Origin: Isurus oxyrinchus
Lineage: Eukaryota
DNA: 64,000 bases
Assembly (NCBI GenBank): GCA_026770705.1
Contig: JANJGN010000052.1
Location: 3,286,001 to 3,350,000, forward strand
Direction: 5' to 3'
This document shows, piece after piece, positions 14,362 through 56,943 of the stretch. The translations under genes and the position numbers were made by a program. Numbering within the stretch: position 1 is the first letter of the stretch; each line of letters starts with the position of its first letter. Below the pieces are notes generated by a model. That model saw only the letters and a list, made by a program, of their open reading frames with translations. It searched no databases and was not told the DNA's origin.

Positions 14362-14610
14362 TCAGTTTTTCTGGAACCTGATCTGTGCGTATTCCGTGTC
14401 CTCGCTCCTATGCACAGTCCTGTCACCGCCGGGCAGCTTTGAAAAGTTGATGTTGGCGTAGAAAAGCTCGTCGGGTTTGTCAGGGTTCCCATGTCCAACA
14501 TCGCCTCCCACTGGACCTTCAGAGAGATCCCGGAGAGCTGGGGTCTCCCCCTCACTAGTTGTGTCTCTGGTGGTGTTCCGGGGCTCAGTAATCAGCACGT
14601 TCTGTTTACC
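14362..14610 (-). CDS. Gene B terminal exon with ITIM (LFYANI) and distal ITSM/ITIM-like motif (TEYAQI)
   Basis: Acceptor ttctctgtag|GGT; GKQNVLITEP...DELFYANINFSK...EDTEYAQIRFQKN*. Arrangement mirrors the CD33-type LxYxxL + TEYSEI/V tail. Confidence 0.88.
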   Translation of the reverse strand, partial: GKQNVLITEPRNTTRDTTSEGETPALRDLSEGPVGGDVGHGNPDKPDELFYANINFSKLPGGDRTVHRSEDTEYAQIRFQKN

Positions 14611-17600
14611 CTACAGAGAAATGGAAACAGAAGACATCCTCACATCATTTACTGGCACTGATAGGGTTAAATTATTGTGCAGCCTCATTATTGTCAGTCG
14701 TGTCTCAGTGGGTTTAAGCCTTTTTTTCACTCTCTTTCTCTGTCTCTCTTTCTCTCGCTTTCTCTCTCTCTTAATAATTTAATCTCTATCGCACTCCAAC
14801 AGTGCAGCACTCCCTCAATACTGACCCTCTGACAGTGCAGCACTCCCTCAGTACTGACCCTCTGACAGTGCAGCACTCCCTCAATACTGACCCTCTGACA
14901 GTGCAGCACTACCTCAGTACTGACCCTCTGACAGTGCAGCACTCCCTCAGTACTGACCCTCTGACAGTGCAGCACTCCCTCAGTACTGACTCTCTGACAG
15001 TGCAGCACTCCCTCAGTACTGAACCTCTGAAAGTGCAGCACTCCCTCACTACTGACCCTCTGACAGTGCAGCACTCCCTCAGTACTGACCCTCTGACAGT
15101 GCAGCACTCCCTCAATACTGACCCTCTGACAGTGCAGCACTCCCTCAATACTGACCCTCTGACAGTGCAGCACTCCCTCAATACTGACCCTCTGACAGTG
15201 CAGCACTCCCTCAGTACTGACCCTCTGACAGTGCAGCACTCCCTCAGTACTGACCCTCTGACAGTGCAGCACTCCCTCAGTACTGACCCTCTGACAGTGC
15301 AGCACTCCCTCAATACTGACCCTCTGACAGTGCAGCACTCCCTCAGTACTGACCCTCTGACAGTGCAGCACTCCCTCAGCACTGACCCTCTGACAGTGCA
15401 GCACTCCCTCACTACTGACTCTCTGACAGTGCAGCACTCCCTCAGTACTGACCCTCTGACAGTGCAGCACTCCCTCAGCACTGACCCTCTGACAGTGTAG
15501 CACTCCCTCACTACTGACCCTCTGACAGTGCAGCACTCCCTCAGTACTGACCCTCTAACAGTGCAGCACTCCCTCAGTACTGACCCTCCGACAGTGCAGC
15601 ACTCCCTCAGTACTGACCCTCTGACAGTGCAGCACTCCCTCAATACTGACCCTCCGACAGTGCAGCACTCCCTCAATACTGCCCCTCTGACAGTGCAGCA
15701 CTCCCTCAGTACTGACCCTCTGACAGTGCAGCACTCCCTCAGTAGTGACCCCCTGACAGTGCAGCACTCCCTCAATACTGACCCTCTGACAGTGCAGCAC
15801 TACCTCAATACTGACCCTCTGACAGTGCAGCACACCCTCACTACTGACCCTCTGACAGTGCAGCACTCCCGGAATACTGACCCTCTGACAGTGCAGCACT
15901 CCCAAAATACTGACCGTCTGACAGTGCAGCACTCCCTCACTACTGACCCTCCGACAGTGCAGCACTCCCTCAGTACTGACTCTCTGACAGTCCAGCAATC
16001 CCTCAGTACTGACCCGCTGACAGTGCAGCAGTTCCTCAGTACTGATCATCCGACAGTGCAGCACTCCCTCAGTACTGACCCTCCGACAGTGCAGCACTCC
16101 CTCAGTAATTACACTCTGACAGTGCACAACTCCCTCAGTACTGACCCTCCAACAGTGCAGCACTCCCTCACTACTGACCCTCCGACAGTGCAGTACTCCC
16201 TCAGTACTGACCCTCTGACAGTGCAGCACTCCCTCAGTAATGACCATCTGACAGTCCCGCACTCCCTCAGTACTGACCCTCTGACAGTGCAGCACTCCCT
16301 CAGTGCTGACCCTCCGACAGTGCAGCACTCCCTCAGTACTGACACTCTGACATTGCAGCACTCCCTCAGTACTGACCCTCTGACAGTGCAGCACTCCCTC
16401 AGCACTGACCCTCTGACAGTGCAGCACTCCCTCACTACTGACCCTCTGACAGTGCAGCACTCCCTCAGTACTGACCCTCTGACAGTGCAGCACTCCCTCA
16501 CTACTGACCCTCTGACAGTGCAGCACTTCCTCAGTACTGACCCTCTGACAGTGCAGCACTCCCGCAGTACCGACCCTCCGACAGTGCAGCACTCCCTCAG
16601 TACTGACCCTCTGACAGTGCAGCACTCCCTCAATACTGACCCTCTGACAGTGCAGCACTCCCTCAATACTGACCCTCTGACAGTGCAGCACTCCCTCATT
16701 ACTGACCCTCTGACAGTGCAGCACTCCCTCAGTACTGACCCTCTGACAGTGCAGCACTCCCTCAGTACTGACCCTCTGACAGTGCAGCACTCCCGGAATA
16801 CTGACCCTCTGACAGTGCAGCACTTCCTCACTACTGATCCTCCGACAGTGCAGCACTCCCTCAGTACTGACTCTCTGACAGTCCAGCACTCCCTCAGTAC
16901 TGACCCGCTGACAGTGCAGCACTTCCTCAGTACTGATCATCCGACAGTGCAGCACTCCCTCAGTACTGACCCTCCGACAGTGCAGCACTCCCTCAGTAAT
17001 GACACTCTGACAGTGCACAACTCCCTCAGTACTGACCCTCCGACAGTGCAGCACTCCCTCACTACTGACCCTCCGACAGTGCAGTACTGCCTCAGTACTG
17101 ACCCACTGACAGTGCAGCACTCCCTCAGTAATGACCATCTGACAGTCCCGCACTCCCTCAGTACTGACCCTCTGACAGTGCAGCACTCCCTCAGTGCTGA
17201 CCCTCCGACAGTGCAACACTCCCTCAGTACTGACGCTCTGACAGTGCAACACTCCCTCAGTACTGACCCTCCGACAGTGCAGCACTCCCTCAGTACTGAT
17301 CCTCTGACAGTGCAACACACCCTCAGTACTGACCCTCCGACAGTGCAGCACTCCCTCAGTACTGACACTCTGACAGTGCAGCACTCCCTCAGTACTGACC
17401 CTCCGACAGTGCAGCACTCCCTCAGTACTGACACTCTGACATTGCAGCACTCCCTCAGTACTGACCCTCTGACAGTGTAGCACTCCCTCAGTTCTGACAT
17501 CAGGTGCCTTGTCATTAATGTGTTCAGGTTTCTGGTCAAAGAGCGAGTGATGGAGGGAGACAGAGGCTGGGAGCGAGAGACAGTGCTGACCACTGAGCCA

Positions 17601-20600
17601 TTGCTGACTTCACAGGGCGATATCTGTGTGTAACCCGGCTGAGAATCTGGTATATGTGTTGTGTACACACTGAGGTTGAAGCTTTGGAGTGAGTGTAAAC
17701 AGCTCCTGTACCTGGTGCTTCACAGAGAGTGGACTGGGGGTCAATGCAATGTCACTGGTCCCTGAAACTCTCTCCTCCATCGCTGTCTTTCTCCTGCAAT
17801 AACACAATATCACACTGTGGTTATCATATAGCAGAGAGTCAGTGCAGCACAGACACAGAGCCCACTGTAACCTTACACCAACGACTGGACTGTCTCTAGT
17901 TCCAATAAGGGGTATCAGCGTGACATCACTATAATGGAAGTGTGTCATGTGATCCAATCTTAGTTTCACTTTTGCTTTGAGCAGAGCACACACTCACAGC
18001 TCTGATGCCTTCAATCTTTATCCGTATGTATAACTGTTCTCGTGCCGAGTCTTGATAAACAAACCGACAACATTCTCACCCAAACCCTGTGAGCGATTGG
18101 TGCTTTGTTTCTTGTACAGTAAATAAGCCCAAGGTATAATATCATTATAATAACACGCCATATCTTTGACCCGCCCTCCACCCCTGCACTTCCCCCCATA
18201 GCCCTTCAAATGTTCCCCCTTCAAGTATTTATTCATTTACCCTTTTGAAAGTTCCTATTGAATCTGCTTCCAGCACCCTTTCAGGCAGCACCTTCCAGAT
18301 CACAGCAACTGATTATTATTCATCTGGATAACGGGCAATGAAAAACACTCTCTGGATCATAAGGGACAAAGAGACCAGTTACGGAGAGGCATCTGGCGCT
18401 TAACACAAGGGAAACAATCACCGACTTCAGGAAAGAACATTGAAGCAAATATCAATCCAGGAGTAATCGTGCAGAGTGAGGAATCTCTGGGTCTCGTGAT
18501 CGTTTACCTGGATACAGGACAATGAAAGGTTCTCTCCGGATCAGAGTGGACACAGGGACCACTTACAGAGAGGGACCTGGTGCTGATCCCAAGGGAAACA
18601 ATCACCGACTTAAGGAAAGAACATTGAAGCAAATGTTTATATTAAAATCAAGTTAAATCTTCAGACTTACTTTCTCACACAGATGAAGATGAAGATTCCA
18701 GCCAGGAAAACACTCAACATGATCCCAGCCGTGAACAATCCTACTGTCCATTTACTGGAGTCTCTACCTGTAAAAACAGCCATTAGTTACTGCACTACAG
18801 GTTTACAATGATGCTCCGATGTATCTCGAGAAGCGATACACTCACTCAGTGTTTAAATACTCATTCTCGGGCAATGCTGACATTTATTGTCCATCCCTAG
18901 TTTCCCCTTGAGAAGGTGGTGGGGGGTCTTCCTCCTGAACCACTGGTTTGTCCCAAACTGGGAGACCAGTTCAGAGGGCAGGTGTGAGTTAACCATGTTG
19001 GTGTCTGAGACTGGAGTCACATCCACATCGAGACATGCTTCCCTCCCTAAAGGGTATGTAGTCTCTACACATGTAACAACCAACCTCACTGAAATAATCA
19101 ACTATCAGGTCATTATCACACGGTGGTTTGCGGGATCTTGCTGTGCACAAATCAGTACCTGTGTTTCCTACATTACAAAAGTGTGCTCACTTCGATAATG
19201 CTTCATTGGCTGTTGAATGTTTAGTAATTTCTAAGCAATTTATGAATACAGGTGTTGCATTTCAAAGTAATCCATGTAACATTTATATATAATATTTATC
19301 AATTAAAGAATGAGAAGTTCAGCAATTAAAAGGGTTGTTCAGGACAGTTAGAGAGAGAAAGGTCATCAAGTACGGAGATTGGAAACGAAGACCTGACAGC
19401 CTTGTCCTCACAACCATTGAAGGAGAAACTGAGAGCAAAAACAGAAAGGGAGAGGAAAAATTGGATGTGTGGATAACGTGGACTGAGCGAGGATTGAAGA
19501 AAACTGGATTAAAAACAACACGATCCCAATGGCTCCACGGAGACCACGGAGACAACAAACAAACAAATGTATCTCCACACTCACATTCCACAGTGATGGT
19601 TATGAACCCCTCCACTGCTCCATGTTCATTCTCTGCCACACACTGATAGTCTCCAGTGTCCCTGGATGTAACGTGAGGAATCACCAACCACAGCTCATTG
19701 TTGGAACCTGTTCTGTTCATTGCGACATTAAGATGTCGCCACGTCAGGTTAGAAGCTGGGAAGCTCTCGACAGAGCAGATTATCATTGTAGAATTCCCCT
19801 CAATTATATTGATCGATGAAGCGTTAATCATATCAAGAGAAGTAAATGAGAGATTCTGTGGAGCATCTAAGAACAAATCAAGTGTTTAATGTGAGCAAGC
19901 ACAGTTTACAGCAAGACTCCATGCATTATCTCTCTGTATCTGATGTCTGTATGCATAGCCAGGTCCCTCCACTCCATATAACTTCCACTGTCAAATTTAT
20001 AATGGGCACTGCCTATGTAAACAGTCAAACTGCAGTTACATTCTCCCACCAGTAGAGGTGCTGTCCACCTAGAATGAAAGGAATTTGCTTTCACATCCTC
20101 AGGATGTCCCCAAGGGCTTGACAGGCAATGATTGTATTTGATCAATGGAGCACTGAGGGGTAAATATACAATTCTCTGTTCAGGAGGTTGCTCATCCAAT
20201 TCAGGGACTTGTTGATCTGTAGTTTACCTTCGTTCCATCCAGAATTGGAGCTGATACCGAGACTCCAGTGCAGTGAGTGCTTGTGTGTGCGTGTGGGTGT
20301 GCATTTGTGTATATGTGTTCAAATCTGAGAGAGATGTTGAATTCTGTGTACACTCACATTCCACAGTGATGGTTATGAACCCCTCCACTGCTCCATGTTC
20401 ATTCTCTGCCACACACTGATAGTCTCCAGTGTCCCTGGATGTAACGTGAGGAATCACCAACCACAGCTCATTGTTGGAACTTGTTCTGTTCATTTGGACA
20501 TTAAGATGTCGCCACGTCAGGTTAGAAGCTGGGAAGCTCTCGACAGAGCAGATTATCACTGCAGAATTCCCCTCAATTATATTGATCGATGAAACGTTAA

Positions 20601-23600
20601 TCATATCCAGAGAAGTAATTAAGAGATTCCGTGGTGTGTCTAATAATAAATAAAGATTTTAATGTGAGCAAGCATAGTGCGCAGCAAGACTCCATGCATC
20701 ATCTCTCTGTATCTGATGTTGGAATGCCTTTCCAGGTACCTTCCCTCATGAAAAATTACTGTCACATTTATAATGGGCATTTCCTATGTAAACTGTCACA
20801 CTGCAGTTGCATTCTCCCACCAGTAGAGTTGCTGTCCATCTAGAATGAAAGAAACATCGTTTAACACTCTCAAGATGCCCCCAAGGGATTGAAAGCCATT
20901 GAATTGTATTTGATTGATGGAGCACTGAGGGGTAAATCTACCATTCTCTGTTCAGGAGGTTGCTCATCCAATTCAGGGTCTTGTTGATCTGGAGTTTACC
21001 TTCCTTCAACACAGAATCGAAGCTGATACCGAGACTCCAGTGCGGCCCTGAGAGAGAAGAGGGACCTCACGCGTGTTTATGTGTATGTGTTTGTGTTTCT
21101 ACATATGTGAGTATGTTTGTGTGAGTATGCATGCATGTGTCTGTGTGTGCATGTATGTGTTTGCGCATATGTGAGTGTGTTTTTGTGTATATTTCTGTGC
21201 ATGAGTGAATGTGTGTACATGTGTATGTGTATGTGTGTGCATGTGTGAGTGTGTGTGTGTGAGTTGAGTGTGTGTATGTTTCTGTGTATATTTTTGCATG
21301 CGTATGTTTGTGTGTGTAAATGTGCATGTATGTGTCTACACGAGTGCATGTTGTGTTTTTGTGTGTGTGTGTGTGTGTCTGTGTGAGAGTGATGTTGAAG
21401 TTTGCAGTAACTCACATTCCACAGTGATGGTTATGAACCCCTCCACTGCTCCATGTTCATTCTCTGCCACACACTGATAGTCTCCAGTGGCCCTGGATGT
21501 AACGTGAGGAATCACCAACCACAGCTCATTGTTGGAACTTGTTCTGTTCATTGGGACATTAAGATGTCGCCACATCAGGTTAGAAGCTGGGAAGCTCTCG
21601 ACTGAGCAGATTATCACTGCAGAATTCCCCTCAATTATGTTGATCGATGAAGAGTTAATCATACCAAGAGAAGTAATTGAGAGATTCCGTGGTGCATCTA
21701 AAAACATAGAAAGATTTTAATGTGAGCAAATATAGTGCACAGCAAGACTTCATGCATCATCTCTCTGTATCTGATGTCTGAATGCATTTCCAGGTAACTT
21801 CCCTCATGATGAGGTCTTATGGCACATTTATAATTGACACTGCCGATGTAAACTGTCACACTGCAGTTGCATTCTCCCACCAGTAGAGGTGTTGTCCATC
21901 TAGAATGAAAGAAGCTTGCTTTCACATCCTCAGGATTTCGCAAAGGGCTGGACAGGCAATGAATTGTATTTGATCGATGGAGTACTGAGGTCTAAATCTA
22001 CATTTCTCTGTTCAGGAGGTTGCTCATCCAATTCAGGGTCTTATTGATTTGGAGTTTACCTTCTTTCAACACAGATTCGGAGATGACACTGAGACTCCAG
22101 TGCAGCACTGAGAGAGGACACGGAACTCACATGTGTGTATGTGTGTGTTTGTGTTTGTGTTTCTGCACAAGTGAGTGTGCTTGTGTGTGTATGCACACAT
22201 GTATCTGTGTGTGCGCATGCATGCGTGTCTGTGTGTCTATGTCTGTCCATGAGTGAGAGTACGTGTATGTGTGTGTCTTTGTGTGGGCATGAATATGTGT
22301 GTGTGTTTGAGATGGGTGTGTATTTTCCTGTGTATGTGTTTGTACGTGTATGACTGTCTGTGTATACTTNNNNNNNNNNNNNNNNNNNNNNNNNNNNNNN
22401 NNNNNNNNNNNNNNNNNNNNNNNNNNNNNNNNNNNNNNNNNNNNNNNNNNNNNNNNNNNNNNNNNNNNNNNNNNNNNNNNNNNNNNNNNNNNNNNNNNNN
22501 NNTAACTCACGTTCCACAGTGATGGTTATGAATCCCTCCACTGCTCCATGTTCATTCTCTGCCACACACTGATAGTCTCCAGTGTCCCTGGATGTAACGT
22601 GAGGAATCACCAACCACAGCTCATTGTTGGAACTTGTTCTGTTCATTGGGACATTAAGATGTCGCCACGTCAGGTTAGAAGCTGGGAAGCTCTCGACAGA
22701 GCAGATTATCACTGCAGAATTCCCCTCAATTATATTGATCGATGAAGCGTTAATCATATCTAGAGAAGTAATTGATGGGTTCCGTGGTGCATCTAAATAC
22801 AAATAAAGGTTTCATTGTGAGCTAACACAGTGCACAGCAAGATTCCATGATACATCTCTCTCTATTTGGTGTCTGTGTGCATTTCCAGGGTTCTTTCCTG
22901 TTTTAAGTTCCTATGTCAACTTACATAATGGTCACTGCCGGTGTTTTTCTTTTTGTACATTCATGGGAAGTGGCTGTATCTATCTAGACCAGCATTTATT
23001 ACCCATCCCTAATTGCCCTTGAGGAAGTGGTGGTGAGTTTTTCACCCCCGCAGAATTCCCAGCCTCTGACCGGCTCCTGTAGCCACAGTATTTATGGCCG
23101 GGCCAGTTAGTTGTTTGGGTAACATCCCCCAGGATGTTGATTGTGGGGGATTCAGCGATAGTGAAGTGATTGAATATCAAGGAGAGATGGTTAGATTCTC
23201 TCTTGTTGGAGATGATCACTGCCTGGTGCTTGTGTGGTGTGAACGTTACTTGTCATTTCTCAGCCCAAGCTGAGTGTTGTTGAGCTCTTGCTGCGTGTGG
23301 ATATGTAAACTGTCACGCTGTAATTACAGAGATAAAAACAAAAAAACTGCGGATGCTGGAAATCCAAAACAAAAACAGAATTACCTGGAAAAACTCAGCA
23401 GGTCTGGCAGCATCGGCGGAGAAGAAAAGAGTTGACGTTTCGAGTCTTCATGACTCTTCGACAGAACTTGAGTTCGAGTCCAAGAAAGAGTTGAAATATA
23501 AGCTGTTTTAAGGTGTGTGTGTGGGGGGCGGAGAGATAGAGAGAGAGAGAGGGGTGGAGTGGGGGTGTGGTTGTAGGGACAAACAAGCAGTGATAGAAGC

Positions 23601-35600: not shown

Positions 35601-38365
35601 CAGGGCAATGGAGCCTCAGGAGAAGAGATGGAAACCCTGTGAGGTGGAACGTCACTGAGGCCATCCGAGTTGAAGCGACTTTTGGAGAGAATTCCAAGGC
35701 AAGATCTTCGAAGTTGAAGACTGGAATCCCTCATGAGAGAAACAGAGTTTCAGTGAGATTGGTTGACTGACAGTGTTCACTGATGTCCGGGTGGGTTGTT
35801 GTGAAATCCATGGGATCTGTCTTGGTCGCGTTTACAATTTAATGAGTAGTGTGGCTGTGAGACCACAGTTTGCCTGTTAATTCACATGAGCTCATATTAA
35901 TCCAGAATGTTAGGGTATAAGGTGGATATTGTAAATTATTTTATCTTTCTGACCTGGTGCAGTAAAGTTTATTTTTGTTTGTTTAAAAGCCATGGAAACT
36001 CTGTTTCTCTCATGAGGGATTCCAATCTTCAACTTCGTACATCCTGCCTTGGAATTCTCTCCAAAAGTCGCTTCAACTCGGATGGCCTCAGTGACGTTCC
36101 ACCTCACAGGAATCTTGTAGCTTTATTCTCTTCGCAGGCGTCTTAAATCTCAAACCTCATCTCCTTGAAACAAAACATTACTTGTTCCTAACTGTAAATT
36201 ACCAAAAAACATTGGTTTCTGTTCCTCCATCAGCAACTCTTCAGAATCCTGCTGAAGTCACGGATATTTCAGAAGGACAGGGAACAAGCGGTTTCTGGTA
36301 TCAGCGTTTTGTGTGGGGCCCAGTTCAGTTTGAACAAATAAACAACACCATCTTTGAAAGTCATGAACCCACCAGAGCGGCACCTCCGACACATGCAGAT
36401 CTCAGGCGAGAGGCGCTTTGTTAGTGTGTTTCACAGTGTCTGCTGGAGTAGGGTCAGTGCTGAGAGGGTCTGCTCAAGGATCATAACAACCTGCACTTGC
36501 ACCTTCCAAGTAATAAGATTTTGTAAATGTATTCATTCATGGGATGTGGGCGTCGCTGCCAAGGCCAGCATTTGCTGCCCATCTCTAATGTCCCGTGACA
36601 TAATCTCTGTAGCAGAGTAGAGACAATCATGATCACTCAGGATATTTGACATCTATCCACATGAGCAGCTTAGGCTTCCTTCTCTCTTTCAGTTATCTTA
36701 CTCCCTTATTGAAGTTTCTAGCATGGTGAGAACTGGATGGTTTGCTCGGACATTTCAGAGGAACCACGTTGCTATGAGTCTGGAGTCACATGTAGGCCAG
36801 ACCAGATATAGACGGCAGATTTCCTTCCCTAAAGGCCATTAGTGAACCAGATGGGTGTGTATGACAATCGATGATAGTTTCATGGTCTCCATTACTGAGA
36901 CTAACTCCCATTAGCGTAAACAGAGTGAACAGTTTTCCATTGATCCCACCTTTCCCGTTCTCTCCGGTATTTTACACACTATTGCTCGATAATTTGATTC
37001 TGCCAAGGACCCCTTGGAAAATCATGGACCCCAGTTAGACAACCAATGGAATAAGGAATCTCTTTGGATTCTAACTGCCAAAGGAATCTCTTTGGATCCT
37101 CATTGTCTGAAGAATCTCTTTGGATCCTCATTGTCTAGGGGATTATTTCTGATCCAAACCCCATATTGTTGTATGGTTGATTCCGATGCAGCATTGTAGA
37201 CTGACTTGTCCCCAAGCTCAGCACTGACCCTACTCCAGCAGACCCTGAGAAACACAATAACAAAGCGCCTCTAGCCTGAGCTCTGCATGTGTCGGAGATG
37301 CCGCTGTGGTGGGTTCATGACTTTCAAAGATGCTGTTGTCATTTTTTTGCTCAAACTGAACTGGGCCCCACATGAAACGCTGATACCAGAAACCTCTTGT
37401 TCCCTGTCCTTCTGAAACATCTGTGATTCAGCAGGATTCTGAAGATTTGCTGACAAGGTTCTTAAATTGTCTGATTGTTGAATGATACAACACAGGAGGA
37501 GCTCATTTGACCCATCGTGCATGTGCTGGCTCTTTCCCAATTCCTCTCCAGCACCTTTCACACAGCCCTGCAAATTTCCCTTCAAGTATTTATCCAGTTC
37601 CCCTTCTGAAAGTTCCTGTTGAATCTGCTTCCACCGCCCTTTCAGGCAGTGAGTCAATGGTCTCTCTCTGAGCTGCAAAGTGCTAAGATTCTGTGAAATG
37701 TAAACTCTGCAGCAGATCAGAGACACTCATGATAACTCAGAATATTTGACAGAATTACACACAAACGGCTTCATCTTCTTCTCTCTTTCAGTTATCTTGC
37801 TCCCTTATTGAAGTATCTAGCAAGGTGAGAATGGACAGGAAGTGTGACACTGAACAGCCTGTCTATTCTAGGAGCTGCTGTGTTGTCTTCATGGGTAATT
37901 TTGAATACAGGCAGCAAAGAACAAAAATTTCAGGCCATTGCTATTGGAGACCTCGCATTAGGATAGGCTTCATCCGCCAGTATTTATCTCTGCTTCTCTA
38001 CTAAACCCATCAATCCCCATCGCTCAGTGACCAACGTCCGACAGCAACTGAATTTTAAGATTCTGCTCTAGCTGCTACAAACCTGCCTATCCCTGTACAC
38101 TCCTTCAGCCCCTACAACCCTGCAAGACCTCTGCTGTCCTCCAATTCTGCTGTCAGACAGGGAGTCAGTGTATATCAGTGAGCACAGGGGTGATGGATAA
38201 ATGGGACTTGGTGTGAGTTTGTACACTGGCTCACTGCTGAATCAGTTCTCTATCAGAGCTCAATAAGAATGATCTTTTACAAAGACTATTAACCATAAAT
38301 CTGTCCGAGCTGACGATGGTATTACCTTGGAGAAGTGACAGGAGGAAGTAAGATTTCCGAATCAT
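14362..38365 (-). CDS. Gene B: inhibitory Siglec-like receptor (leader-V-V-C2-[Ig]x8-9-TM-ITIM/ITSM), ~1252 aa with 8 stalk exons
   Basis: The exons used in this model have GT/AG sites and compatible phases (1-1 for Ig exons; TM 1-2; first cytoplasmic exon 2-0; last exon phase 0). Siglec cysteine pattern and F-strand Arg (YFFRIE) are present, and no stops were seen in the exons used. Confidence 0.85.
14798..17490. repeat. Intronic 33-bp minisatellite (~81 units, ACAGTGCAGCACTCCCTCAGTACTGACCCTCTG)
   Basis: Direct inspection; accounts for the long repetitive ORFs on both strands. Confidence 0.95.
17712..17793 (-). CDS. Gene B first cytoplasmic exon (KRKTAMEERVSGTSDIALTPSPLSVKHQ)
   Basis: ttattgcag| ... 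CAG|gtacag; 82 nt, phase 2-0, joins the TM and ITIM exons in frame; conserved copy at 44795-44876. Confidence 0.78.
18671..18767 (-). CDS. Gene B transmembrane exon (CRDSSKWTVGLFTAGIMLSVFLAGIFIFICVR)
   Basis: gtttttacag| ... |gtaagt; ~23 uncharged hydrophobic residues followed by a basic stop-transfer motif RKRK after splicing. Confidence 0.85.
19585..19866 (-). CDS. Gene B stalk Ig exon 10 (membrane-proximal)
   Basis: 282 nt, phase 1-1; ICSVESFPASNLTW...DTGDYQCVAENEHG (C2/I-set C-W-DxGxYxC). Confidence 0.9.
20358..20639 (-). CDS. Gene B stalk Ig exon 9
   Basis: 282 nt, AG/GT intact, open frame. Confidence 0.88.
21416..21697 (-). CDS. Gene B stalk Ig exon 8
   Basis: 282 nt, AG/GT intact, open frame. 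Confidence 0.88.
22511..22792 (-). CDS. Gene B stalk Ig exon 7
   Basis: 282 nt, AG/GT intact, open frame. Confidence 0.88.
22944..23300 (-). mobile_element. Internally deleted CR1/L2-family LINE 3' fragment in a stalk intron
   Basis: Similar to 12110-12920 (CCATCCCTAATTG.CCTTGAG; GTTGGAGATG.TCA.TGCCTGG). Confidence 0.65.
23430..23470 (-). ncRNA. Minimal type I hammerhead ribozyme-like motif (A6U variant) in the left Penelope arm
   Basis: AGTT-CTGTCGA-A-GAGTC-ATGAA-GACTC-GAAAC-GTC-AACT on the minus strand. Confidence 0.55.
25381..25421 (+). ncRNA. Minimal type I hammerhead ribozyme-like motif (A6U variant) in the right Penelope arm
   Basis: AGTT-CTGTCGA-A-GGGTC-TTGAG-GACTC-GAAAC-GTC-AACT. 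Confidence 0.55.
26066..26268 (-). pseudogene. Gene B stalk Ig exon 6, 5'-deleted pseudo-exon (no acceptor)
   Basis: Sequence jumps from exon (TTATCACT) directly into intron (TATTTCACATTT); ~199 bp missing relative to the unit at 28089-28500. Confidence 0.85.
27136..27417 (-). CDS. Gene B stalk Ig exon 5
   Basis: 282 nt, AG/GT intact, open frame. Confidence 0.88.
28089..28370 (-). CDS. Gene B stalk Ig exon 4
   Basis: 282 nt, AG/GT intact, open frame. Confidence 0.88.
29089..29370 (-). CDS. Gene B stalk Ig exon 3
   Basis: 282 nt, AG/GT intact, open frame. Confidence 0.88.
30073..30113 (-). CDS. Gene B stalk Ig exon 2 (only the first 41 nt visible; remainder in N gap)
   Basis: Acceptor gtttttag|ATGGACCACAG..., GPQNVSITSLGMI, then Ns. 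Confidence 0.65.
30859..31140 (-). CDS. Gene B stalk Ig exon 1
   Basis: 282 nt, AG/GT intact; DAPQNLSITSLDMINASWINIIEG... Confidence 0.9.
31272..31567. repeat. 33-bp minisatellite, ~9 copies
   Basis: Direct inspection; the equivalent intron in gene C has only ~1 unit (55243-55280). Confidence 0.9.
31685..31981 (-). CDS. Gene B C2-set Ig exon (Siglec domain-2 type)
   Basis: 297 nt; DFTDKPTIFP...SCTFNTTCNG...LTW...LSCRVRYP; extra BC-loop Cys as in CD33-type domain 2. Confidence 0.9.
32353..32721 (-). CDS. Gene B second V-set exon (V2)
   Basis: 369 nt, phase 1-1; AEPSQEW...SCVQIPCHYSYPSCLEN...DCSLIINNIRREDAGPYFFRIE. Confidence 0.9.
32853..32990 (+). ncRNA. Short Penelope-derived terminal-repeat element with a canonical hammerhead ribozyme core (32857-32891)
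   Basis: CTGATGA-A-GAGTC-ATACG-GACTC-GAAAC-GTT-AACT, followed by the same GATGCTG.CAGACCTGCTGAGTTTTTCC tail as the Penelope arms; inserted in a CR1 fragment. Confidence 0.7.
32995..33650 (+). mobile_element. Degenerate CR1 LINE ORF2 3' fragment
   Basis: LQKDINKLAEW-like start; AGGAGAAACTTCTTTACCCAGAGA CR1 3' motif. Confidence 0.65.
34387..34755 (-). CDS. Gene B first V-set exon (V1)
   Basis: 369 nt, phase 1-1; VGLSQEW...SCVQIPC...DCSL...YFFRIE. Confidence 0.9.
35636..36110. repeat. ~115-bp inverted repeat (35636-35751 / 35995-36110)
   Basis: CCTGTGAGGTGGAACGTCACTGAGGCC...AACAGAGTTTC and its reverse complement. Confidence 0.85.
38326..38365 (-). CDS. Gene B leader exon, MIRKSYFLLSLLQ
   Basis: ACCATG start, 40 nt, CAAG|gtaata phase-1 donor. 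Confidence 0.82.
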
Positions 38366-44876: not shown

Positions 44877-45009
44877 CTGCAATAACACAATATCACACTG
44901 TGGTTATCATATAGCAGAGAGTCAGTGTAGCACAGACACAGAGCCCACTGTAATCTTAGACCAACGACTGGGACTGTCTCTTTAAATCAGTTCTATACAA
45001 AGCACAGAA

Positions 45010-46440: not shown

Positions 46441-46985
46441 GCAGTGCAGTGCTCCCTCAGTACTGACCCCCCCCCCGCCTGTGCAGCACATCCTCAATGG
46501 TGACCCTCTGTCAGTCTCGCACTCCCTCTGTACAGTGCAGCACTTCCTTAGCACTGACCCTCTGACAGTGCAGCACTCCCTCGGAACTGACCCTCCATCA
46601 GTGCAGCGCTCACTCAGTACTGACCCTCCAACAGTGCAGCACTGCCTTAGCACTGACCCTCTGACAGTGCAGCACTCACTCAGTACTGACCCTCCAACAG
46701 TGCAGCACTCCCTTAGCCCTGACCCTCTGACAGTGCAGCACTCCCTCAGTACTGACCCTCCAACAGTGCAGCACTCCCTTTTCACTGACCCTCTGACAGT
46801 GCAGCACTCCCTCAGTACTGACCCTGCAACAGTGCAGCACTTCCTTAGCACTGACCCTCTGATGGTGCAGCACTCCCACATTACTGACCCTCTGACAGTG
46901 CAGCACTCACTCAGTACTGACGCCTCCAACATTGCAGCATTCCCTCTGCACTGACCCTCTGACAGTGCAGCACTCCCTCAGTAAT
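46441..46985. repeat. 33-bp minisatellite, ~15 copies
   Basis: Direct inspection. Confidence 0.9.
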
Positions 46986-47795: not shown

Positions 47796-47835
47796 ATGAT
47801 CGGGAAATCTTACTTCCTCCTGTCACTTCTCCAAG
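47796..47835 (+). CDS. Gene C leader exon, MIGKSYFLLSLLQ
   Basis: ACAATG start; CAAG|gtaata donor. Confidence 0.82.
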
Positions 47836-50800
47836 GTAATATCATCGTCAGCTCAGACAGATTTATGGCTAATAGTCTTTGTAAAAGATCATTCTTATTG
47901 AGCTGTGATTGGGAACCGATTCAGCAGTGAGCCAGTGTACAAACTCATACCAAGTCCCATTCACCCATCACCCCTGTGCTCACTGATATACACTGACTCC
48001 CTGTCTGACAGCAGAATTGGAGGAGAGCAGAGATCTCAGAGGGTTTTAGGGTTGGAGCAGGTTACAGGGATCGGGAGTGTAGAGGGGGGATGGTGGGGTA
48101 AGAAATCAATGATGAGAATTTGAAATTTGAGTCATTGCTGGACTGGGAGCCAGTGTAGGTCAGTGAGTGACAGGGGAGCGATCGGCTGAATAGAGAAACA
48201 GGGATAAAAACTGGGGGATGAAGTCTATCCTGATGTTAGGACTCGGATAACAATGCCCTGAAATTTTGTGTCATTTGCTGATTTTAGTCAGGACTTCCCA
48301 TGAAGACAACACAGCAGCTCCTAGAATAGACAGGCTGTTCAGTGTCACACTTCCTGTCCATTCTCACCTTGCTAGATACTTCAATAAGGGAGCAAGATAA
48401 CTGAAAGAGAGAAGGAAGGTAAAGCTGTCTGTGTGTAAAACTGTCAAATATTCTGAGTTATCATGATTGTCTCTGATCTGCTGCAGAGTTTAAATTTCAC
48501 AGAATCTGAGCACTTTGCAGCTCAGAGAGAGACCATTGACTCACTGCCTGAAAGGGCGGTGGAAGCAGATTCAACAGGAACTTTCAGAAGGGGAACTAGA
48601 TAAATACTTGATAGGAACATTTTGCAGGGCTGTGGAGGAGAGAGCAGAGGTGACAGTGGGACTTATTGGACAGATCTTTCAAAGGTCCAGCACAGGCTCG
48701 ATGGGCCAAATGACTTCCTTCTGTTCCGGATCATTCTGCAATCTGATAAATTAAGCCCCACATCAATAACTCTTAAGGCTCCTGCTGCAGGGATGGAGCT
48801 TTGAGAAGGACAGAGAATAAGAGGTTTCTGGTATCATTTTCATATTGTACTGAATCTTGCTGCCAGAATGTTTGGCCACCGCTGATCACCATGTTGTGTT
48901 TTTATAATGATATAAAGGCACCAGCCACTGATACGGAATTGGGTAAATACATTGTGGGTTCAGTTATTTAGAACAGGGACATGAGAACAGATATACAAGG
49001 ATAGAAAGCTGGGAGACACCTGCAGCCAAACTGTGTGAGCTGTGTTCTGCTCACAGACCGAAGTGAAACTTGGACTGGATGGTGTTATCATCCCAGCTGA
49101 TGTTACTACTGGGCAAGTCAGATCCCAGGGTGGAACTCAGCTTGATAGGTCCTAACTTTTATTTTTTATTTAGGAATGTGGAGTGCGGCTACTGAACAGA
49201 GTCACAGGAGTCATCTGATGAACTTCTAACAAAAGAATAAAACATTTATTAAACTAGGAAAGACAAACTATATGACATTACTCCTTCACCCAGACCTATA
49301 CATTTACAGTTTCATAAGGATAACACAATTACAATAACTAACTTATACTCTCATGTTCACACTAAGTACACAGTCGATGTAAAACAGTAGACGACCTGGG
49401 GTCAGGGACACCACATTCTGAAACCAAGTGACAGAACCCACTTGGAACAAATGCTCCGGGTCCCTCCTCAACTGACTCTAGACGCTTGTTACACCGTGAG
49501 GCAACTGGTCTAACGAAACTGCTTCTTTCACATGAGAGTTTCCAATCTCTACTCACCAAGTGCTCTCTTTGGAATCTTCTCCAACATGACACTTTCACTC
49601 AGACACCTTCCACAAGGGTCCACTTTCACTATTTCAAACTCTCCTTCCCATGTTCCTGCCCCCTGGATCGCCACGTGCATTCAGCCTTCCTTCCACGCCC
49701 TGTCTCTCCAATGCTCAGCCGTGTCAATGGAACACCATGGCTTCACATGGCCGTAGTAATGAGTCACCAACCTGTGGTGTCTCCTAGGATCTTCTGGCTT
49801 CTCATAAGCCTTTTTTGCTTTGGGTCTGTGTCCTTTTGCCCATTCTCTTTTAGCTTGGATCCCTCCTCTGAACCTCAACCTTAACTTGACTTAACAGGAC
49901 CTTGTCCAGATTCCTGATCTTCCTTGGACGAGAAGGTCTTCTTGGCCCTTTCTCCTGTTCCACTTGATGGTTTTTGCTTCTTCTATAATTTGGGACTGAC
50001 TATCTGTCCCGCTCCTTTGCTGCTTCTCCTGGCAACTCCTTTCAACAGAACTGAAAGTACATTTCTCTTTTTCTCAGTCTCTGTGGGTCCTTCCCTCTGG
50101 ATCACTGTTGCCAGGCAACAGCACAGTTTCTTACACCTTGTATTTGTTTTGACTTCCCTTCAACAGTCACCAAACCTCATTAGATTGCTGGCTTCTATAA
50201 AAATGAAACTAAAAGTCAAGTTTCCCCCTTTCTTAACACACAAATACAGAAATCAAACTAAACTTGAACTTAAAGATAGACCTTATGCCTAACACACACA
50301 AATACACATAGAACTTACTTAATCTATCCCCAGTTCCTAAAAATCACATGACACACTTCCCCTCGAGTGATGTCATGCTGCTATCCCTGAAAGGCATATT
50401 ACAACAGTGTTATCACTTGACAGGTGATGTGTGCCAGGCAGACCAAGTCCATGAGAGAAAGGTGGTCACACGATCATAATGATTTTGCAATTTGTATTTA
50501 TTATGAGATGTGTGCACTGAATTCAGAAGCAATAATTACTCTAGGAACTTTAGAGATTTGAAAATTAAATTAAAATACTTGCTCTCAGAATAAATGATAT
50601 CATGCATGTACATGACACTACAATTACCATTTTAATAATAATTCTTAAAATTCCGAAATAACCTGACTCCCAGTTACACTCCCTTTAAGGCAACGGTCCA
50701 AAAATAGAGTTTATATTTAAAACAAACTCAGCAAGTTAACACAATATAAAAGCAATACCCTGCACAGAGGAATTCCAAGTGGCTTTTCCCCAACTTCAGT

Positions 50801-53800
50801 TCTGTTGGATAGCAGGCTTGTGCACAAATGCTAGTGGTTTCATTAAGACTATATCACACACTCGTGTTAGATCTTACATGGCATTCTGACACATAGCCTT
50901 TCATTCTCCCTGATAGATATATATTTCTCTCTTTGTAACATGAAAATTCTATTGTTCCAAATGTTTTTGAAACTGTATCTTCCTCATAACAAATTCTTTT
51001 GTGGTGCCCATATTGCCAGGAGCCTTTGAGAAAAATAAGCACATTCCTTAGTCTTGCTTATCTGGCTAGTTGTAAACAAACTAAGATTCCTTTGAAATCC
51101 AACAACCCCTTCATTGAAATAAAAATGCAAATTCTCTTCATACCTTCCATGCTAAGCAGCATCCATGTTTACTCAATAGCATGTCAAGCACCTAGCTCCT
51201 TTTGATCATTTTAAACTTCCAATCTAATTAACTCCAAATGTACTTAAATCACATGCAGACCCATCATGCGTACCCCCATAAACTTACTTCACAATATACT
51301 ATAAAATTTTATGAAAATTATTATACTTTCATCACAATAGGAACCACTGCCTTAGACACTGAGGATCTAGGACAGCTAGGCCAATTCATGATTCATGATG
51401 GTGATAATGGGGGAATTCTGAAGGCTCCTAATCCATTGTCCTAGTTTGTAAATCAGCAGTGAACTCACTTCAATTAGTGTGTCTTGTAGACACTGTGTTG
51501 GGTGGAAGACTGGCTTCACTAAGCAGGTTCCTGAGGGCCACGAGCCAATGTAGAATGAACTTGTCCACTCCTGTATCCAGGATTCTCTTCAATGTGTTGT
51601 GAAACATTGGGGCATTCATTGTGAGTCCAGACTGCAGCCACTGTGCCCCAGTGATGGAGGGGGTGGATTTTGAGTCTAGTGGATTGACAAAACATTCAGA
51701 GTTAAATATTGATATTTCTCCCCCTAGCTGGACTACCACAAGTGTGGAAAGGTGACACTCCACGAGAGGTGACAGCGCAGGAAGGTTCGTGTGTACAGAT
51801 TCCATGTCATTACAGCTACCCATCATATTTAGTACCGAGATCACCTGTTGGAAACTGGTATATGAGAAGGAATTGGGAAAGATGGTCTATAGCCTTTCAC
51901 TCCAAGGATCACAGTCGCGAGTTACCACGGTTCCACCATCGGACCCGGCTTTCTGGAGACCTGAAAGATGGTGACTGTTCCCTGATTATAAACAACATCA
52001 GACGGGAAGATGCAGGATATTATTTATTCAGAACAGATTTTGACAGCAGGAATAGATACAACGACCGTCCTGAAACCCAGCTTCATGTTTCTGGTAAGTG
52101 CTGTGTTATAATTACTCAACAATTCACATCCAACACTCAATGGGAAATAATAGTGTTTGATTTGCTTGTTTTTTGGCCGTGTTAACCAGCGTCACTATTT
52201 TTAATGATTTGTCTATTTCTGCTCCCAGATCCATGAGCTTATTGTGTGTGATTGAATCCACATCATAGCTGTAACGTAAACCGACCTGAGGGGTGATGAC
52301 ACCTCCCCCCTGAGTGAAGTGTCTCCTCCCCACTACACCTTCCACCCCTCACACTGTCTGTGTAATCTCCCGTCCCATTCCCAGCCTCTCTTTCCCCTCC
52401 AAAGTCCTGCAACGTGTTTCCATCTCCCGAATCCGTTCCCATCTTTCCCGGAACTCCATGTTTGAATCCCTTCAATCAGGTTCCCACCCCAGCCACTGTG
52501 CTGAAACAGCTCTTATTTTTATTGAGCCAATGCCAAGCCCCGATACCGAGCGAGAGCCTCCTCATTTGCTGAGTTTAAGGTGATGAGTCAGCCCCTTAGT
52601 CCGTAGAGGGGATTCTCCTCGGTAATGTGCAGCCTTGTTTGTGTCTCTCCACAAGCGCATGAGGGGTTTGTACAGAGGCTGCAGCGCTGGAGGGGGTCTG
52701 CACAGGGGTCCTGGCCTGTCCTGAGCCAGTTTTAGCAAGGACAACTCTGGCCTTGGCAGCTGAAAGCCAGCCATTGGACAGACGGGGCCTGTCACAAGGA
52801 GCCTGTTAGTCCCTCCCCCCAGTGTCTCCTGTGCTCAGATCCAGACCATGTTGGCTGGTGGATCTGGCTCAGGAAGGGTCCTCCCCATGGGACCCCCAGA
52901 TGGAAGGTGGGTCGAGCGGGTCAGTCACTTGCATGTTTATTCTGCAGCTTTAATATTTTAGGAAGGTAAGAATGTAGGAACATAAGAAATAGGGACAGGA
53001 GCAGGCCATTCGGCCCCTCCAGCCTGCTCTCACTGATCTGGTTGCGGGCTTAACTCCATTTTCCTGCTTGTCCCCCAAACCCTTGACTCCCTTGTCGATC
53101 AAAAACCTGCCTCACTCAGCCTTGAGTCTATTCAATGGCCCAGCCTCCACTGCTCTCTGGGGAAGAGAATTCCACAGGCTAGCGCCCCTCTGAGAGAGGA
53201 AATTCCTCCTCATCTCAGTCTTAAATGGGAGAGCCCTCATTCCGAAACTGTGCTCCCTGGTTCTAGATTCCCCCACGAGGGGGAAACATCCTCCCAGCAT
53301 CCACCCTGTCAAGCCCCCTCGGAATCGGATATGTTTCAATAAGGTCACCCCTCATTCTTCTAAACTCCAATGGATACAGGCCCAACCTGCTCAACATTTC
53401 CTCACAGGACAAACCCTTTAATCCCAGGAATCAGCCCAGTGAAGCTTCTCTGAACTGCCTGTACACAATGATCCTGTTACAATCTCACTAACACCCTGTG
53501 TAGCTGTTGCAAGACTTCCCTCCTTTTATACTCCATCCCTTTGCAATAAAGGCCAACATTCCACTTGCCTTCCTCATTCCGTGGTGTTCCTGAATGCTGA
53601 CTTTCTGTGATTCATGTACAAGGACACCCAGATCCTTCTGTACTGCATTCTGCAGCCTGTCTCCATTTAAATTATATCCTGATTTTCTATTCTTCCTGAC
53701 AATATAATTTGTTGCCATTTTCCTCAGTATTAACCATCCCCCCAATTCAGCCTCATCTGTAAATATCGGGTTCAGTGGATCCACAAACCATTCAGAGTTA

Positions 53801-56800
53801 AATATTGAGATTTGTCTCCCCAGCTGAACCCTCGCAAGAATGGAAAGGTGACAATCCACGAGAGGTGACAGTGCAGGAAGGTTCCTGTGTACAGATTCCA
53901 TGTCATTACAGTTATCCATCGTGTCTGGAAAACCAACCGCGAGGTGGAGTCTGGTTTAATAATGAGGAATGGAGAACATCGTCTATAGCCTTTCACTCCA
54001 AGGATCACAGTCACGAGTTACCACGGTTCCACCATTGGACCCGGCTGTCTGGAGACCTGAAAGATGGCGACTGTTCCCTGATTATAAACAACATCAGACG
54101 GGAAGATGCGGGTCCTTATTTTTTCAGAATAGAATTTGACAATGGTCCGAGCCATAACTATTACCCTGTAACCCAGCTTCACGTTTCTGGTAAGTGCTGT
54201 GTTATAATTACTCACCAATTCACATTCAACACTCAATGGGAAATAACACAAACTGTGACGTTTACGTATTAACACAAAACACAGCTTATTATAACACACT
54301 GTCTGATTCTCAATAACCTGGTGATCGCTTCCAATTCACTCCTAAAGCAACCTCTAATACTCACTTTAATATCAATGATTAAATGTATTGACTGTGTCCA
54401 TCAATGTTATCAGGTTATCCACTCCTATCGATCTCTCTAATCCTGTCTCGAAGTCTGACTTAGCGACAGAAGAAAGATTCACATTTCTGTAGCACCTTTC
54501 ACCACCTCAGCATGGACCAAATCACTTCACAGCCAATGAGCTGATTCCTGAATTGTAGTTACTATTGTAATGTGGGAAACACAGCAACCAATTTGCACAC
54601 AGCAAGCTCCCACAAATTGCAAAGTAAAAAATGGCCCAGATTGCTGAGGGACTGATGGGTTAGTGCACTCCAAACTCTGGTCTGCTCCACCACCCTCACC
54701 CACTATTATCAGTTCAAGTGTCTCGGAGTGAACGTGTATTAAGCTGAGAGACAGAAACACCAAAGTCTCAAAGCAGGAAATTCTCTCCTAATCATTGTAA
54801 CCTCTCAGATCTGATATCATCCTTGTAAAAGTGCTTTTTCTTGTGGGACTGTGATTTCTATTTGAACTGATGCTTCACGTTATATTTCTCTAAAAGGATC
54901 CATTCTCTGTCTGTTAGATTTCACAGATAAACCCACAATATTCCCTGCTGAAATTATTGCAGGAAAGCGTGTGGATGTAAGCTGCACCTTCAACACAACG
55001 TGCAATGGAACAGCAGCACCTGTCTTAACCTGGGACACTCCCACTGACGTACCTGGATCAGTCTCAAACACTGTAACTCAGCATGGTGTCAGTCTGACCT
55101 ATACTTCTGTTCTGACCCTGATCCCATCACTCAAACACCACGGACACACTCTCAGCTGCAGAGTGAGATATCCATCTGTTTCATCGGAGCGGACCCTCGT
55201 ACTAACTGTGCAAGGTAAGTACAGACACCCTTCATTCTACATCAGCACTCCCTCAGCGCTGACCCTCTGACAGTGCAGCCCGTTCTCAGTGTCCACATTC
55301 TCATGCCTCTCAAAGTGCTTCACAGTCGATAGAAGTTAACTGATCTTTATTTGATTGTTGCTGAATGAAGAGACAAGCTGTCTAAACTTTACATCTCACA
55401 CACATTATTTTCCATGGCAACACCTCCTCCAATCAGAGACCACTTGCTGATTAACCAGCACTCTCTTCCCTTTAAATATAAATTGTTGTTCACTTTCTGT
55501 TGGTAAACCTGCAATCTGTCTTGTTGAGTCCGGTCCTGACATCTGAATATCACAATGAACAGAAGAAGTTCCAACAATGAGCTGTGGTTGGTGATTCCTC
55601 ACATTACATCCAGGGACACTGGAGACTATCAGTGTGCTCAGAGAATGAACATGGAGCAGTGGAGGGGTTCATAACCATCACTGTGGAACGTTAGTTAAGA
55701 CAAACTTCAACATCTCTCTCAGATTGAAACACTACAAAAACACACATAAATATCCAGCCTTAAATAGACACCTGCAGACACACAATCCCACATCTATGAG
55801 CACACACAAAGACACACTCACAAACAAACACACTAGCACATACTCCCCTGTGGATTACCTGACCTCCCTCAGTGTTGCACCGGAGAGTTGACCTGGATTC
55901 TGGGATTTGTGTTCCCTTTCATATTTATGGAAGAATATGGAAATTGCAAAGTCTATTACAGACACTCAGATGCACAGAGATACTCACAGATACTCTCTGC
56001 CTCTCCAACTCTCTATCCTACTTTAAGAACCTTCCTGAAATCTAACTCTTTGACCAGTCACCTGTCCCAATTCCTCCTTACGTGATTTTGTGTGAAATTT
56101 TGTTTGAGTATCTGAGAGTAAGAGGGAAGTGGAGAGGTTTAGGAAGGGAATTCCTGTTGTTGAAAAACTTACATCAAGTTCTCAGTTTTCCAGTGCCCAT
56201 TTTTCACATGATGTCCATGTTCATAATGGGGATTGCCTATGTAAACGTCACGCTGTAGTTACTCTCTCCCACCAGTGGTAGCACGGTAACACTTAACCCT
56301 TGCATCTCCAAGCTTTTCAAGCAATTTCACTTCCTAATTTGCTACTATTCACCTCAACCATTCCCTGTGGGAGCAAGTTCCACATTCTCCCCTCTCTCTG
56401 GGTAAAGATTGGAACTGTTTATTAAGCGGGGGGTGTAAGTCCGTGGGGGAGTCCATCTCGATCCTGCCCGATTCGCACACGCGTCCGAGATGGATTTCCA
56501 CCCTGCACTAAACGTTTCCAGAATTTTCTACAGCACAATCCTGTACACAGCGATGGAGAGAAACATTGGACAGGGAGTCCAACAGCACAATGATCCATTC
56601 TCACCAATGTTCCACGCTAAGGGGAAAGTTCCGATTGTCCACTCTTAGAGTGTTTACTGTGAAAACATTCATTCCACATTGAATCCCAGTGGATGGGTCA
56701 ATATTACAGCAAATGTTGCAGTGATATGAAGCTTGATTTTTCAGCCAGAGTGAGAGATTGAAAGCGGAGAGTCAGTGATGATTTCTTTCTGTGTGTTCTC

Positions 56801-56943
56801 TAGACAGTGGAGGAGAGATTCTGCACGTGATCCTGATCCTGGGAATACGAGCTGTGATATTCCTTGTGGCTGTGGTTATCACTATCGCTGGAGTCTGTGT
56901 CTGGGAGAGACAAACAGTGAAAGGAAGTCGACAGACTGTTTAA
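47796..56943 (+). CDS. Gene C: putative activating Siglec-like receptor (leader-V-V-C2-TM[Arg]-short tail), ~402 aa
   Basis: Exons 47796-47835, 51728-52093, 53824-54189, 54918-55214 and 56804-56943 splice in frame through phase-1 junctions with no stops. Confidence 0.8.
49102..50342. mobile_element. ~1.2-kb LTR-like/interspersed insertion in the gene C leader-V1 intron
   Basis: Begins TGTTA; absent from the paralogous introns of A and B; no ORF. Family not identified. Confidence 0.35.
50410..51336. mobile_element. Solo-LTR-like repeat (same family as 13176-14068)
   Basis: Co-linear similarity (TTTGCAATTTGTATTTATTA, AACCTGACTCCCAGTTACA, ATTATACTTTCAT). Confidence 0.6.
51728..52093 (+). CDS. 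Gene C V1 exon (divergent binding loops)
   Basis: 366 nt; cccctag| ... |gtaagt; SCVQIPC, DCSL, YYLFRTD. Confidence 0.88.
52970..53770 (-). mobile_element. CR1 LINE 3' fragment(s)
   Basis: GESRTR.HS...FKTEMRRNFLSQR...LWNSLPQRAVEAG and QKDLGVLVHESQK motifs. Confidence 0.8.
53824..54189 (+). CDS. Gene C V2 exon
   Basis: 366 nt; AEPSQEW...YPSCLEN...YFFRIEFDNGPSHNYYPVTQLHVS. Confidence 0.9.
54918..55214 (+). CDS. Gene C C2-set exon
   Basis: 297 nt; nearly identical to gene B 31685-31981. Confidence 0.9.
55538..55689 (+). pseudogene. Gene C relic stalk Ig exon (acceptor and 5' part replaced; 1-nt deletion)
   Basis: MNRRSSNNELWLVIPHITSRDTGDYQC, then frameshift (CAGTGTGCTCAGAG versus CAGTGTGTGGCAGAG); intron homology breaks at ~55352, just before the expected AG. 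Confidence 0.8.
56804..56943 (+). CDS. Gene C TM/terminal exon DSGGEILHVILILGIRAVIFLVAVVITIAGVCVWERQTVKGSRQTV*
   Basis: Polypyrimidine acceptor tttctttctgtgtgttctctag|; phase 1; hydrophobic helix with internal Arg; TAA at 56941-56943. Not shown in the ORF track in this frame. Confidence 0.78.

Follow-up and report, generated by a model that had tools for sequence, protein, structure and literature searches.

In paired receptors such as primate Siglec-5/14 and Siglec-11/16, a charged residue in the transmembrane (TM) span recruits an adaptor with an ITAM (immunoreceptor tyrosine-based activation motif), namely DAP12, or FcR-gamma in other families. Here we analyse a stretch of 64,000 nucleotides (nt) from the shark Isurus oxyrinchus (contig JANJGN010000052.1, positions 3,286,001 to 3,350,000; the whole stretch is called the window below). 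Our follow-up was centred on window positions 14362-56943, where two genes for immunoglobulin (Ig) receptors, gene B and gene C, resemble these primate pairs. Like B and C, the genes of Siglec-5/14 and Siglec-11/16 are neighbours, and their ligand-side exons are near-identical through copying or conversion; one gene has a tail with an immunoreceptor tyrosine-based inhibitory motif (ITIM) plus an ITIM-like motif, and the partner has a basic membrane residue and a short tail free of tyrosine (PMC7226832). An ITIM form beside an adaptor-dependent form with a basic membrane residue is likewise found in KIR, LILR/PIR, chicken CHIR, Xenopus FcR-like and teleost LITR/NITR receptors (PMC4016189; PMC4536121), which all belong to other ectodomain families, whereas the ectodomain of B and C is of the Siglec type. 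Receptors with Arg or Lys in the membrane span and ITIM receptors are named in PMC7226832 and PMC4016189. According to the fish Siglec study, in which sharks do not figure, CD33-related Siglecs are lacking from fish genomes (PMC7226832), and the whale shark genome paper merely lists Siglecs among the gnathostome Ig families (PMC8455134). The authors of a preliminary description of this locus were not aware of any account in sharks, and our literature search for shark Siglec pairs found no describing paper either. The paired design is published for mammals; in many elasmobranchs, however, it is already predicted by automatic annotation, which holds models that join V and C2 domains to an arginine-bearing membrane span (Arg-TM) in Carcharodon, Scyliorhinus and others.

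Our analysis makes it likely that genes B and C are both expressed and belong to a large family of Siglec-type Ig receptors in the shark lineage, one that is built from interchangeable exons. Gene B would be a long type I receptor with a signal peptide, two V-set domains, one C2-set domain and about 8-10 near-identical Ig domains, followed by a membrane span without charge and by a tail that combines an ITIM (LFYANI) with a motif (TEYAQI) similar to an immunoreceptor tyrosine-based switch motif (ITSM). By analogy with other ITIM receptors it would most likely recruit SHP-type phosphatases and damp cell activation. Gene C would be a short receptor in which leader, V1, V2 and C2a run into a membrane span with a buried Arg and almost no tail; through this Arg it would most likely pair with an ITAM adaptor that offers an acidic residue (FcR-gamma, DAP12 or a CD3-zeta-like protein) and activate the cell. 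The likeness of B and C would have come about through exon copying or conversion, as in mammals, where this process maintains the similarity within Siglec-5/14 and Siglec-11/16. The earlier proposal of a paired Siglec-like system in the shark lineage is supported by the Siglec domains, the ITIM tail, the splice to the Arg-TM exon and the V-C2-ArgTM models of other sharks.

The domains themselves are of Siglec nature, as had been proposed. All four V exons of B and C score above the Pfam cut-offs for V-set (43-54 bits) and Ig_CD22 (35-41 bits), C2a of both genes lies above the threshold for C2-set_2 (36 bits), and the C2b exon matches Ig_3 and I-set. In a PDB sequence search with V2 the 18 best matches were all Siglecs (E 7.5e-14 to 3.3e-07), with pIgR only after them. 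The solved relatives of V2 are Siglec-5, -8, CD33, -7, -10, sialoadhesin, MAG and Siglec-15, and the PDB matches of C2a include domain 2 of MAG and CD33. In PDB bit scores, V2 ranks slightly higher with CD33-related Siglecs (48-55 bits) than with sialoadhesin (46), MAG (43-44), Siglec-15 (34) and CD22 (27-28 bits). The segment GPYFFRIE of V2 aligns on GSYFFRVE of Siglec-5 and GSYFFRLE of Siglec-8, and the strand-F motif with the arginine that in Siglecs binds the carboxylate of sialic acid reads GYYLFRTDF in V1 of gene C but GPYFFRIEF in its V2 and in both V exons of gene B. The unusual cysteine pattern of Siglecs (a B-E pair within the sheet, an extra Cys that links to domain 2, and three Cys in domain 2) is also kept in the sequence, with SCVQIPC in strand B, DGDCSLII in strand E and a strand F without Cys; C2a has three cysteines (VSC, TTC, LSC) including an extra one, as in domain 2 of Siglecs. 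Homologue searches with the window exons returned cartilaginous-fish proteins only.

The two genes end differently, and both ends are as first described. In gene B the TM exon (18767-18671) is free of charged residues and LFYANI and TEYAQI follow in the last exon, cyt2; the junction coordinates 19585, 18767, 17793 and 14610 are exact by the splice sites in the genomic sequence. LFYANI fits the ITIM pattern and TEYAQI an ITSM/ITIM-like pattern, so that exon 14610-14365 carries both marks of a CD33-related Siglec tail, a proximal ITIM and a distal TEYxxI/V. All Ig exons of gene B are phase 1-1 with ag/gt sites, and the splicing inferred for its TM, cyt1 and cyt2 exons matches the Carcharodon carcharias models P0022 and P0025. 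Gene C ends in a dissimilar exon (56804-56943) with a membrane span whose Arg (ILGIRAVIF) sits about one third into the hydrophobic stretch, and with a 12-residue tail without Tyr. This position of the Arg does not discriminate between FcR-gamma and DAP12 as partner. The B/C combination is thus that of paired receptors, with an ITIM tail on one side and a basic membrane residue plus a short tail without signalling motifs on the other. A second copy of the Arg-TM exon was sought across the window and none was found.

All five coding exons of gene C are open and have canonical splice sites. The introns between its Ig exons are all phase 1, and the reading frames therefore fit at the junction of C2a with the terminal exon. 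The sequence AATAAA lies downstream at 57326. The true leader is 3.9 kb upstream of V1; a conserved block at 51369-51523 (35402-35247 at gene B) was considered as leader exon and rejected, as it has stops in all frames and is repeat-like. An upstream ATG at 47774 precedes the signal-peptide ATG by 22 nt and is out of frame with it. The Gnomon models P0022 and P0025 begin in the frame of such an upstream ATG (MKYLGVDNDREILLPPVTSP), which misfits the phase-1 V exons.

Transcript evidence comes from contigs aligned to 51650-57450. The sequencing runs that hold the 3' end of gene C are small and only presumed to be RNA; there are four of them from two samples and two studies (three runs from one sample, the fourth from the other study), and their contigs cannot give expression level or strand. 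The predicted junction 55214 to 56804, which joins C2a to the Arg-TM exon, is found in all four runs, and so is the junction of V2 to C2a (54189 to 54918): the contigs skip 55215-56803 and 54190-54917, both with GT..AG ends. The main outcome named beforehand as a refutation, the lack of any transcript that joins C2 to 56804, is therefore not borne out. One contig of 850 nt spans C2a, the Arg-TM exon and the 3' untranslated region (UTR), with 5 differences in 619 aligned bases, and over gene C the exon depth is 10-100 times the intron depth. Loose ends of contigs join the leader to a C-like V1, C2b to C2b, and C2b to a TM exon of the gene B type (AGAGACTCCAGTAAATGG...). A junction of C2b to a gene-B-type TM exon is thus seen, in contigs that are not assignable to gene B itself.

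The public proteins closest to the window exons are Carcharodon carcharias gene models (91-98% identical per exon, which applies to V2, C2a and TM), followed by models of the basking shark, catsharks and other elasmobranchs; these models are predictions without a published description. Their ranking bears out the first guess of a cartilaginous fish and makes a lamniform shark the probable source. An exhaustive, profile-free search of public gene models with the 45-residue Arg-TM exon as query matched the C-termini of shark models at 65-84% identity, with ILGIRAxIF invariant. The models that bear it come from Scyliorhinus torazame, Chiloscyllium, Hemiscyllium, Rhincodon and Mustelus, under names such as CD33-like, Siglec-12/-13, sialoadhesin-like, CD22-like and SLAM family 9-like. 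Carcharodon P0012 and P0016 read ...LVLTVQDSGGEILHVI..., which is the junction predicted for gene C, and these two together with S. canicula P0015 ('Siglec-14 isoform X2') have the V-C2a-ArgTM design and the junction exactly as in gene C. Predicted shark Siglec-like models thus share leader, V, C2a and Arg-TM with gene C, joined as TVQ-D-SGGEILHVILILGIRAVIF. None of them is identical to it: no exact protein match was found among the public models, where search length limits may hide a two-V model of ~400 amino acids (aa), and V1 of gene C has no close full-length match among them. A stingray model, P0038, matches weakly (E 0.003 for the pair), with SLAVRGVLF and the Arg in register. By its sequence, the activating-type anchor is conserved across shark orders and common to several receptor families, and can be regarded as a portable cassette. 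A third type of tail is seen in shark models P0024, P0026 and P0031, where an uncharged TM is followed by motifs of the YxN, YENC or YVNV type; in none of the three was an ITIM-like motif detected. The receptor family represented in the window appears from these predictions to have at least three tail types.

The close similarity of B and C, as reported at first for leader, V2 and C2 exons, stands for these exons. It amounts to 38/40 nt (95%) and 12/13 aa in the leader, 347/369 nt (94%) and 91% aa in V2, and 294/297 nt (99%) and 96/98 aa (98%) in C2a; V1, however, is only 81% nt and 70.5% aa identical. The V2 differences are concentrated in one loop, EKQIPWAP in B and EEWRTSS in C. The V2-C2a block of gene C (53706-55246) is 95-97% identical to that of gene B, introns included, whereas the homologous DNA beside it (upstream and V1 regions) is ~83-85% identical. 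This difference points to recent copying or conversion of the V2-C2a block between family members. Within gene B, V1 and V2 are 96.5% identical to each other. C2a of a third member, gene A, is also 97% identical to that of gene C; homogenisation therefore extends through the whole family and is no peculiarity of B and C, which belong to a large homogenised family and do not form an isolated pair.

B and C differ from Siglec-5/14 in several respects. Their near-identity is found in V2 and the first C2 exon but does not extend to the outermost V (70% aa); each gene has two tandem V exons, and gene B has 8-10 extra Ig domains; the anchor of gene C is a cassette common to CD22-like and SLAM-like shark genes; and the family around B and C is much larger and has three or more types of tail. 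Sialoadhesin (Siglec-1) and CD22 resemble gene B in that a long extracellular stalk made of many Ig domains follows the V-set lectin domain, and the V exons pass Ig_CD22. Unlike theirs, the stalk of gene B arose recently, by tandem amplification of a single 282-nt exon (copies 94-99% nt alike), and sialoadhesin has no ITIM, whereas gene B has one.

This stalk is encoded by the C2b array, a tandem repeat with exon+intron units of ~0.95-1.06 kb. The eight intact C2b exons are those at 31140, 29370, 28370, 27417, 22792, 21697, 20639 and 19866. The array also holds seven runs of N, and every unit was compared with the sole ungapped one (28370-27418, 953 nt). Each run sits 6-17 nt past a preserved gtgagt donor and replaces unit positions ~290-450, an intronic CA-rich simple repeat, and both flanks are colinear with the unit on the same strand. 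The exception is run 25880-26056, beyond which the match to the unit is weak (67%) and gives way to an inserted element. The gaps leave all coding frames unbroken except at 29938-30072, where only the first 41 nt of one exon (30113-30073) can be read. A real deletion has removed the acceptor and the first 79 nt of the copy at 26268-26066. The tally of the array is eight exons intact, one unreadable and one dead; continuity across the N runs is plausible. A Penelope-like element with a GIY-YIG open reading frame (23864-24325, minus strand) is inserted at ~23-25.8 kb. The C2b-to-C2b junctions encode Tyr or His, and splicing of 19585 to 18767 yields a codon for Cys (T+GT) immediately outside the membrane; a Cys there could allow disulfide-linked dimers.

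Gene B occupies 38365 to 14362 on the minus strand, gene C 47796 to 56943 on the plus strand, so that the divergent orientation first described is borne out by the leader positions. The two leader exons are 9.4 kb apart, and 'head-to-head' holds for the orientation of B and C, not for a shared promoter. The window as a whole is vertebrate DNA (45% G+C, ten N runs), with short exons, retroelement fragments and a 33-bp minisatellite; besides the seven N runs inside the C2b array, one (42719-42902) lies between B and C. This run, the gaps in the array and the minisatellites on both sides of gene C (46524-46981 and 57674-58291) could be taken to mean that the assembly is at fault, with a mis-joined or collapsed repeat behind the head-to-head layout or the length of the C2b array. 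We regard this as very improbable. There is no gap where the strand switches from the orphan tail exons (to 46296) to the upstream region of gene C (from 47192), the minisatellites on its two sides have direct and not inverted orientation, the sequence beside the gaps is colinear with the repeat unit, and the exon content of either gene does not depend on the layout.

A number of observations weigh against B and C as an expressed receptor pair of the Siglec-5/14 kind. In the 3' UTR the contigs depart from the window at ~1-2% of sites, and because of this mismatch they may represent an allele of gene C or a paralogue very close to it. The V1-to-V2 junction is not among the junctions in the contigs on 51650-57450, so that the mature B and C proteins may carry either V exon or both. 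If V1 is outermost, B and C differ at that position (70% aa) and are not ligand-matched in the strict Siglec-5/14 sense. Gene B also has 8-10 extra C2 domains that gene C does not have, and their number, about 8-10, is uncertain because of the N runs in the array. The C2b remnant and the out-of-frame ATG in gene C, together with the adjacent orphan tail exons, are signs of a rearranged locus. Such signs could also mean that gene C is a transcribed relic, chimeric or a decoy, which does not signal (retained in the cell, inert without a tail, or a competitor for ligand). Besides the decayed remnant at 55538-55697 and the ATG at 47774, this idea can draw on the orphan tail exons at 43.1-46.3 kb, which have no Ig or TM exons, and on the fact that none of the fetched models matches gene C exactly as a protein. 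It is nevertheless improbable, given that five coding exons are open and have canonical splice sites, that a spliced form is seen in two studies (presumed RNA), and that three shark orders have retained the V-C2a-ArgTM design and an invariant ILGIRAxIF, which is unexpected for a mere relic. A different doubt concerns the ligand: B and C might be Siglec relatives by descent that bind other ligands and are not sialic-acid lectins, in which case the likeness to Siglec-5/14 would be limited to signalling architecture. The family diversifies rapidly, with variable patches of the V exons in the C-C' and F-G regions, its V domains are only 30-40% identical to those of mammalian Siglecs, and tandem V domains are unlike any described Siglec. 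We still hold this reading to be unlikely, as the YFFR/YLFR arginine is present in 4/4 V exons, aligned with the essential Arg of Siglec-5 and Siglec-8, and as the Siglec cysteines are retained (strand B has C..PC, strand E has DCS, strand F has none, and the extra one is in C2a).

Reading B and C as expressed members of a Siglec-type family bears on the history of paired receptors. Paired Siglecs have been discussed as a recent, pathogen-driven invention of mammals, and a shark cluster in which ITIM/ITSM Siglecs and Arg-TM Siglecs lie side by side and have converted ectodomain exons in common has a bearing on that view. The brake/accelerator design would then either have the age of jawed vertebrates or have evolved repeatedly along one genetic route, via exon cassettes and gene conversion. 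Tentatively, and with rather less than even confidence, we suggest that the activating/inhibitory Siglec design was present in the elasmobranch ancestor and is not a mammalian novelty. A portable Arg-TM cassette (ILGIRAxIF; SLAVRGVLF in the stingray) would then have been shuffled among Siglec-, CD22- and SLAM-like genes, within a CD33-like expansion reported missing from bony-fish genomes. The locus offers concrete molecules for the adaptor of the ILGIRAxIF helix and for the role of tandem V domains and a 10-domain stalk in glycan recognition. The gain from the window is modest, because the family is already in automatic annotation.

Table 1. Exons and exon remnants of genes B and C and of the region between them (window coordinates).
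Feature	Position	Strand	Remarks
Gene B leader exon	38326..38365	minus	MIRKSYFLLSLLQ; donor G/gtaat, phase 1
Gene B V-set exon 1 (V1)	34387..34755	minus	YFFR arginine retained
Gene B V-set exon 2 (V2)	32353..32721	minus	94% nt identity to gene C V2
Gene B C2-set exon C2a	31685..31981	minus	99% nt identity to gene C C2a
Gene B C2b array	19585..31140	minus	282-nt Ig exons in ~1-kb exon+intron units
Gene B transmembrane exon	18671..18767	minus	WTVGLFTAGIMLSVFLAGIFIFICV; span without charged residue
Gene B cytoplasmic exon 1 (cyt1)	17712..17793	minus	RKTAMEERVSGTSDIALTPSPLSVKHQ
Gene B last exon (cyt2)	14362..14610	minus	coding 14610-14365, LFYANI + TEYAQI, stop 14364-14362
Gene C leader exon	47796..47835	plus	MIGKSYFLLSLLQ
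Gene C V-set exon 1 (V1)	51728..52093	plus	YLFR; ~70% aa identity to gene B V exons
Gene C V-set exon 2 (V2)	53824..54189	plus	YFFR
Gene C C2-set exon C2a	54918..55214	plus	donor gt directly after 55214
Gene C decayed C2b remnant	55538..55697	plus	3' half only, 1-nt frameshift, no acceptor; skipped in observed splice
Gene C terminal exon	56804..56943	plus	acceptor ag directly before 56804; (D)SGGEILHVILILGIRAVIFLVAVVITIAGVCVWERQTVKGSRQTV; TAA 56941-56943
Orphan cyt2-like exon between B and C	46296-46051	minus	inhibitory-type tail
Orphan cyt1-like exon between B and C	44875-44795	minus	99% nt identity to gene B cyt1 region
Orphan cyt2-like exon between B and C	43347-43105	minus	inhibitory-type tail

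The two orphan cyt2-like exons between the genes carry LLYANP/FLYANP plus TEYAQI and, with the cyt1-like exon, fit the tail type of model P0022. A TM or Ig exon belonging to these tail exons (43105-46296) was sought in the window and none was found. Most probably these exons are what is left of a broken inhibitory paralogue, perhaps of the tail that an ancestor of gene C once had. An inversion, in which the 5' half of an inhibitory gene was flipped away from the orphan tail, was considered as a possible origin of gene C; one simple inversion does not account for the order of the remnants.

Gene A lies on the minus strand at window positions 1-3150 and runs off the window start. It has a leader at ~3100, a single V exon at ~560-930 and C2a at 1-272. 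Because its V exon contains an in-frame TGA (IINNIR*EDAG), gene A may be a pseudogene, or else the V exon may be skipped.

The 33-bp minisatellite (ACAGTGCAGCACTCCCTCAGTACTGACCCTCTG) occurs at 14799-17498, 31273-31568, 43496-43780, 46524-46981, 57674-58291 and ~6121-6352; 82 copies are located in the last intron of gene B, and gene C is flanked by it in direct orientation. Outside the genes, reverse-transcriptase fragments are present at 12738-13235 and 61104-61487, both on the minus strand.

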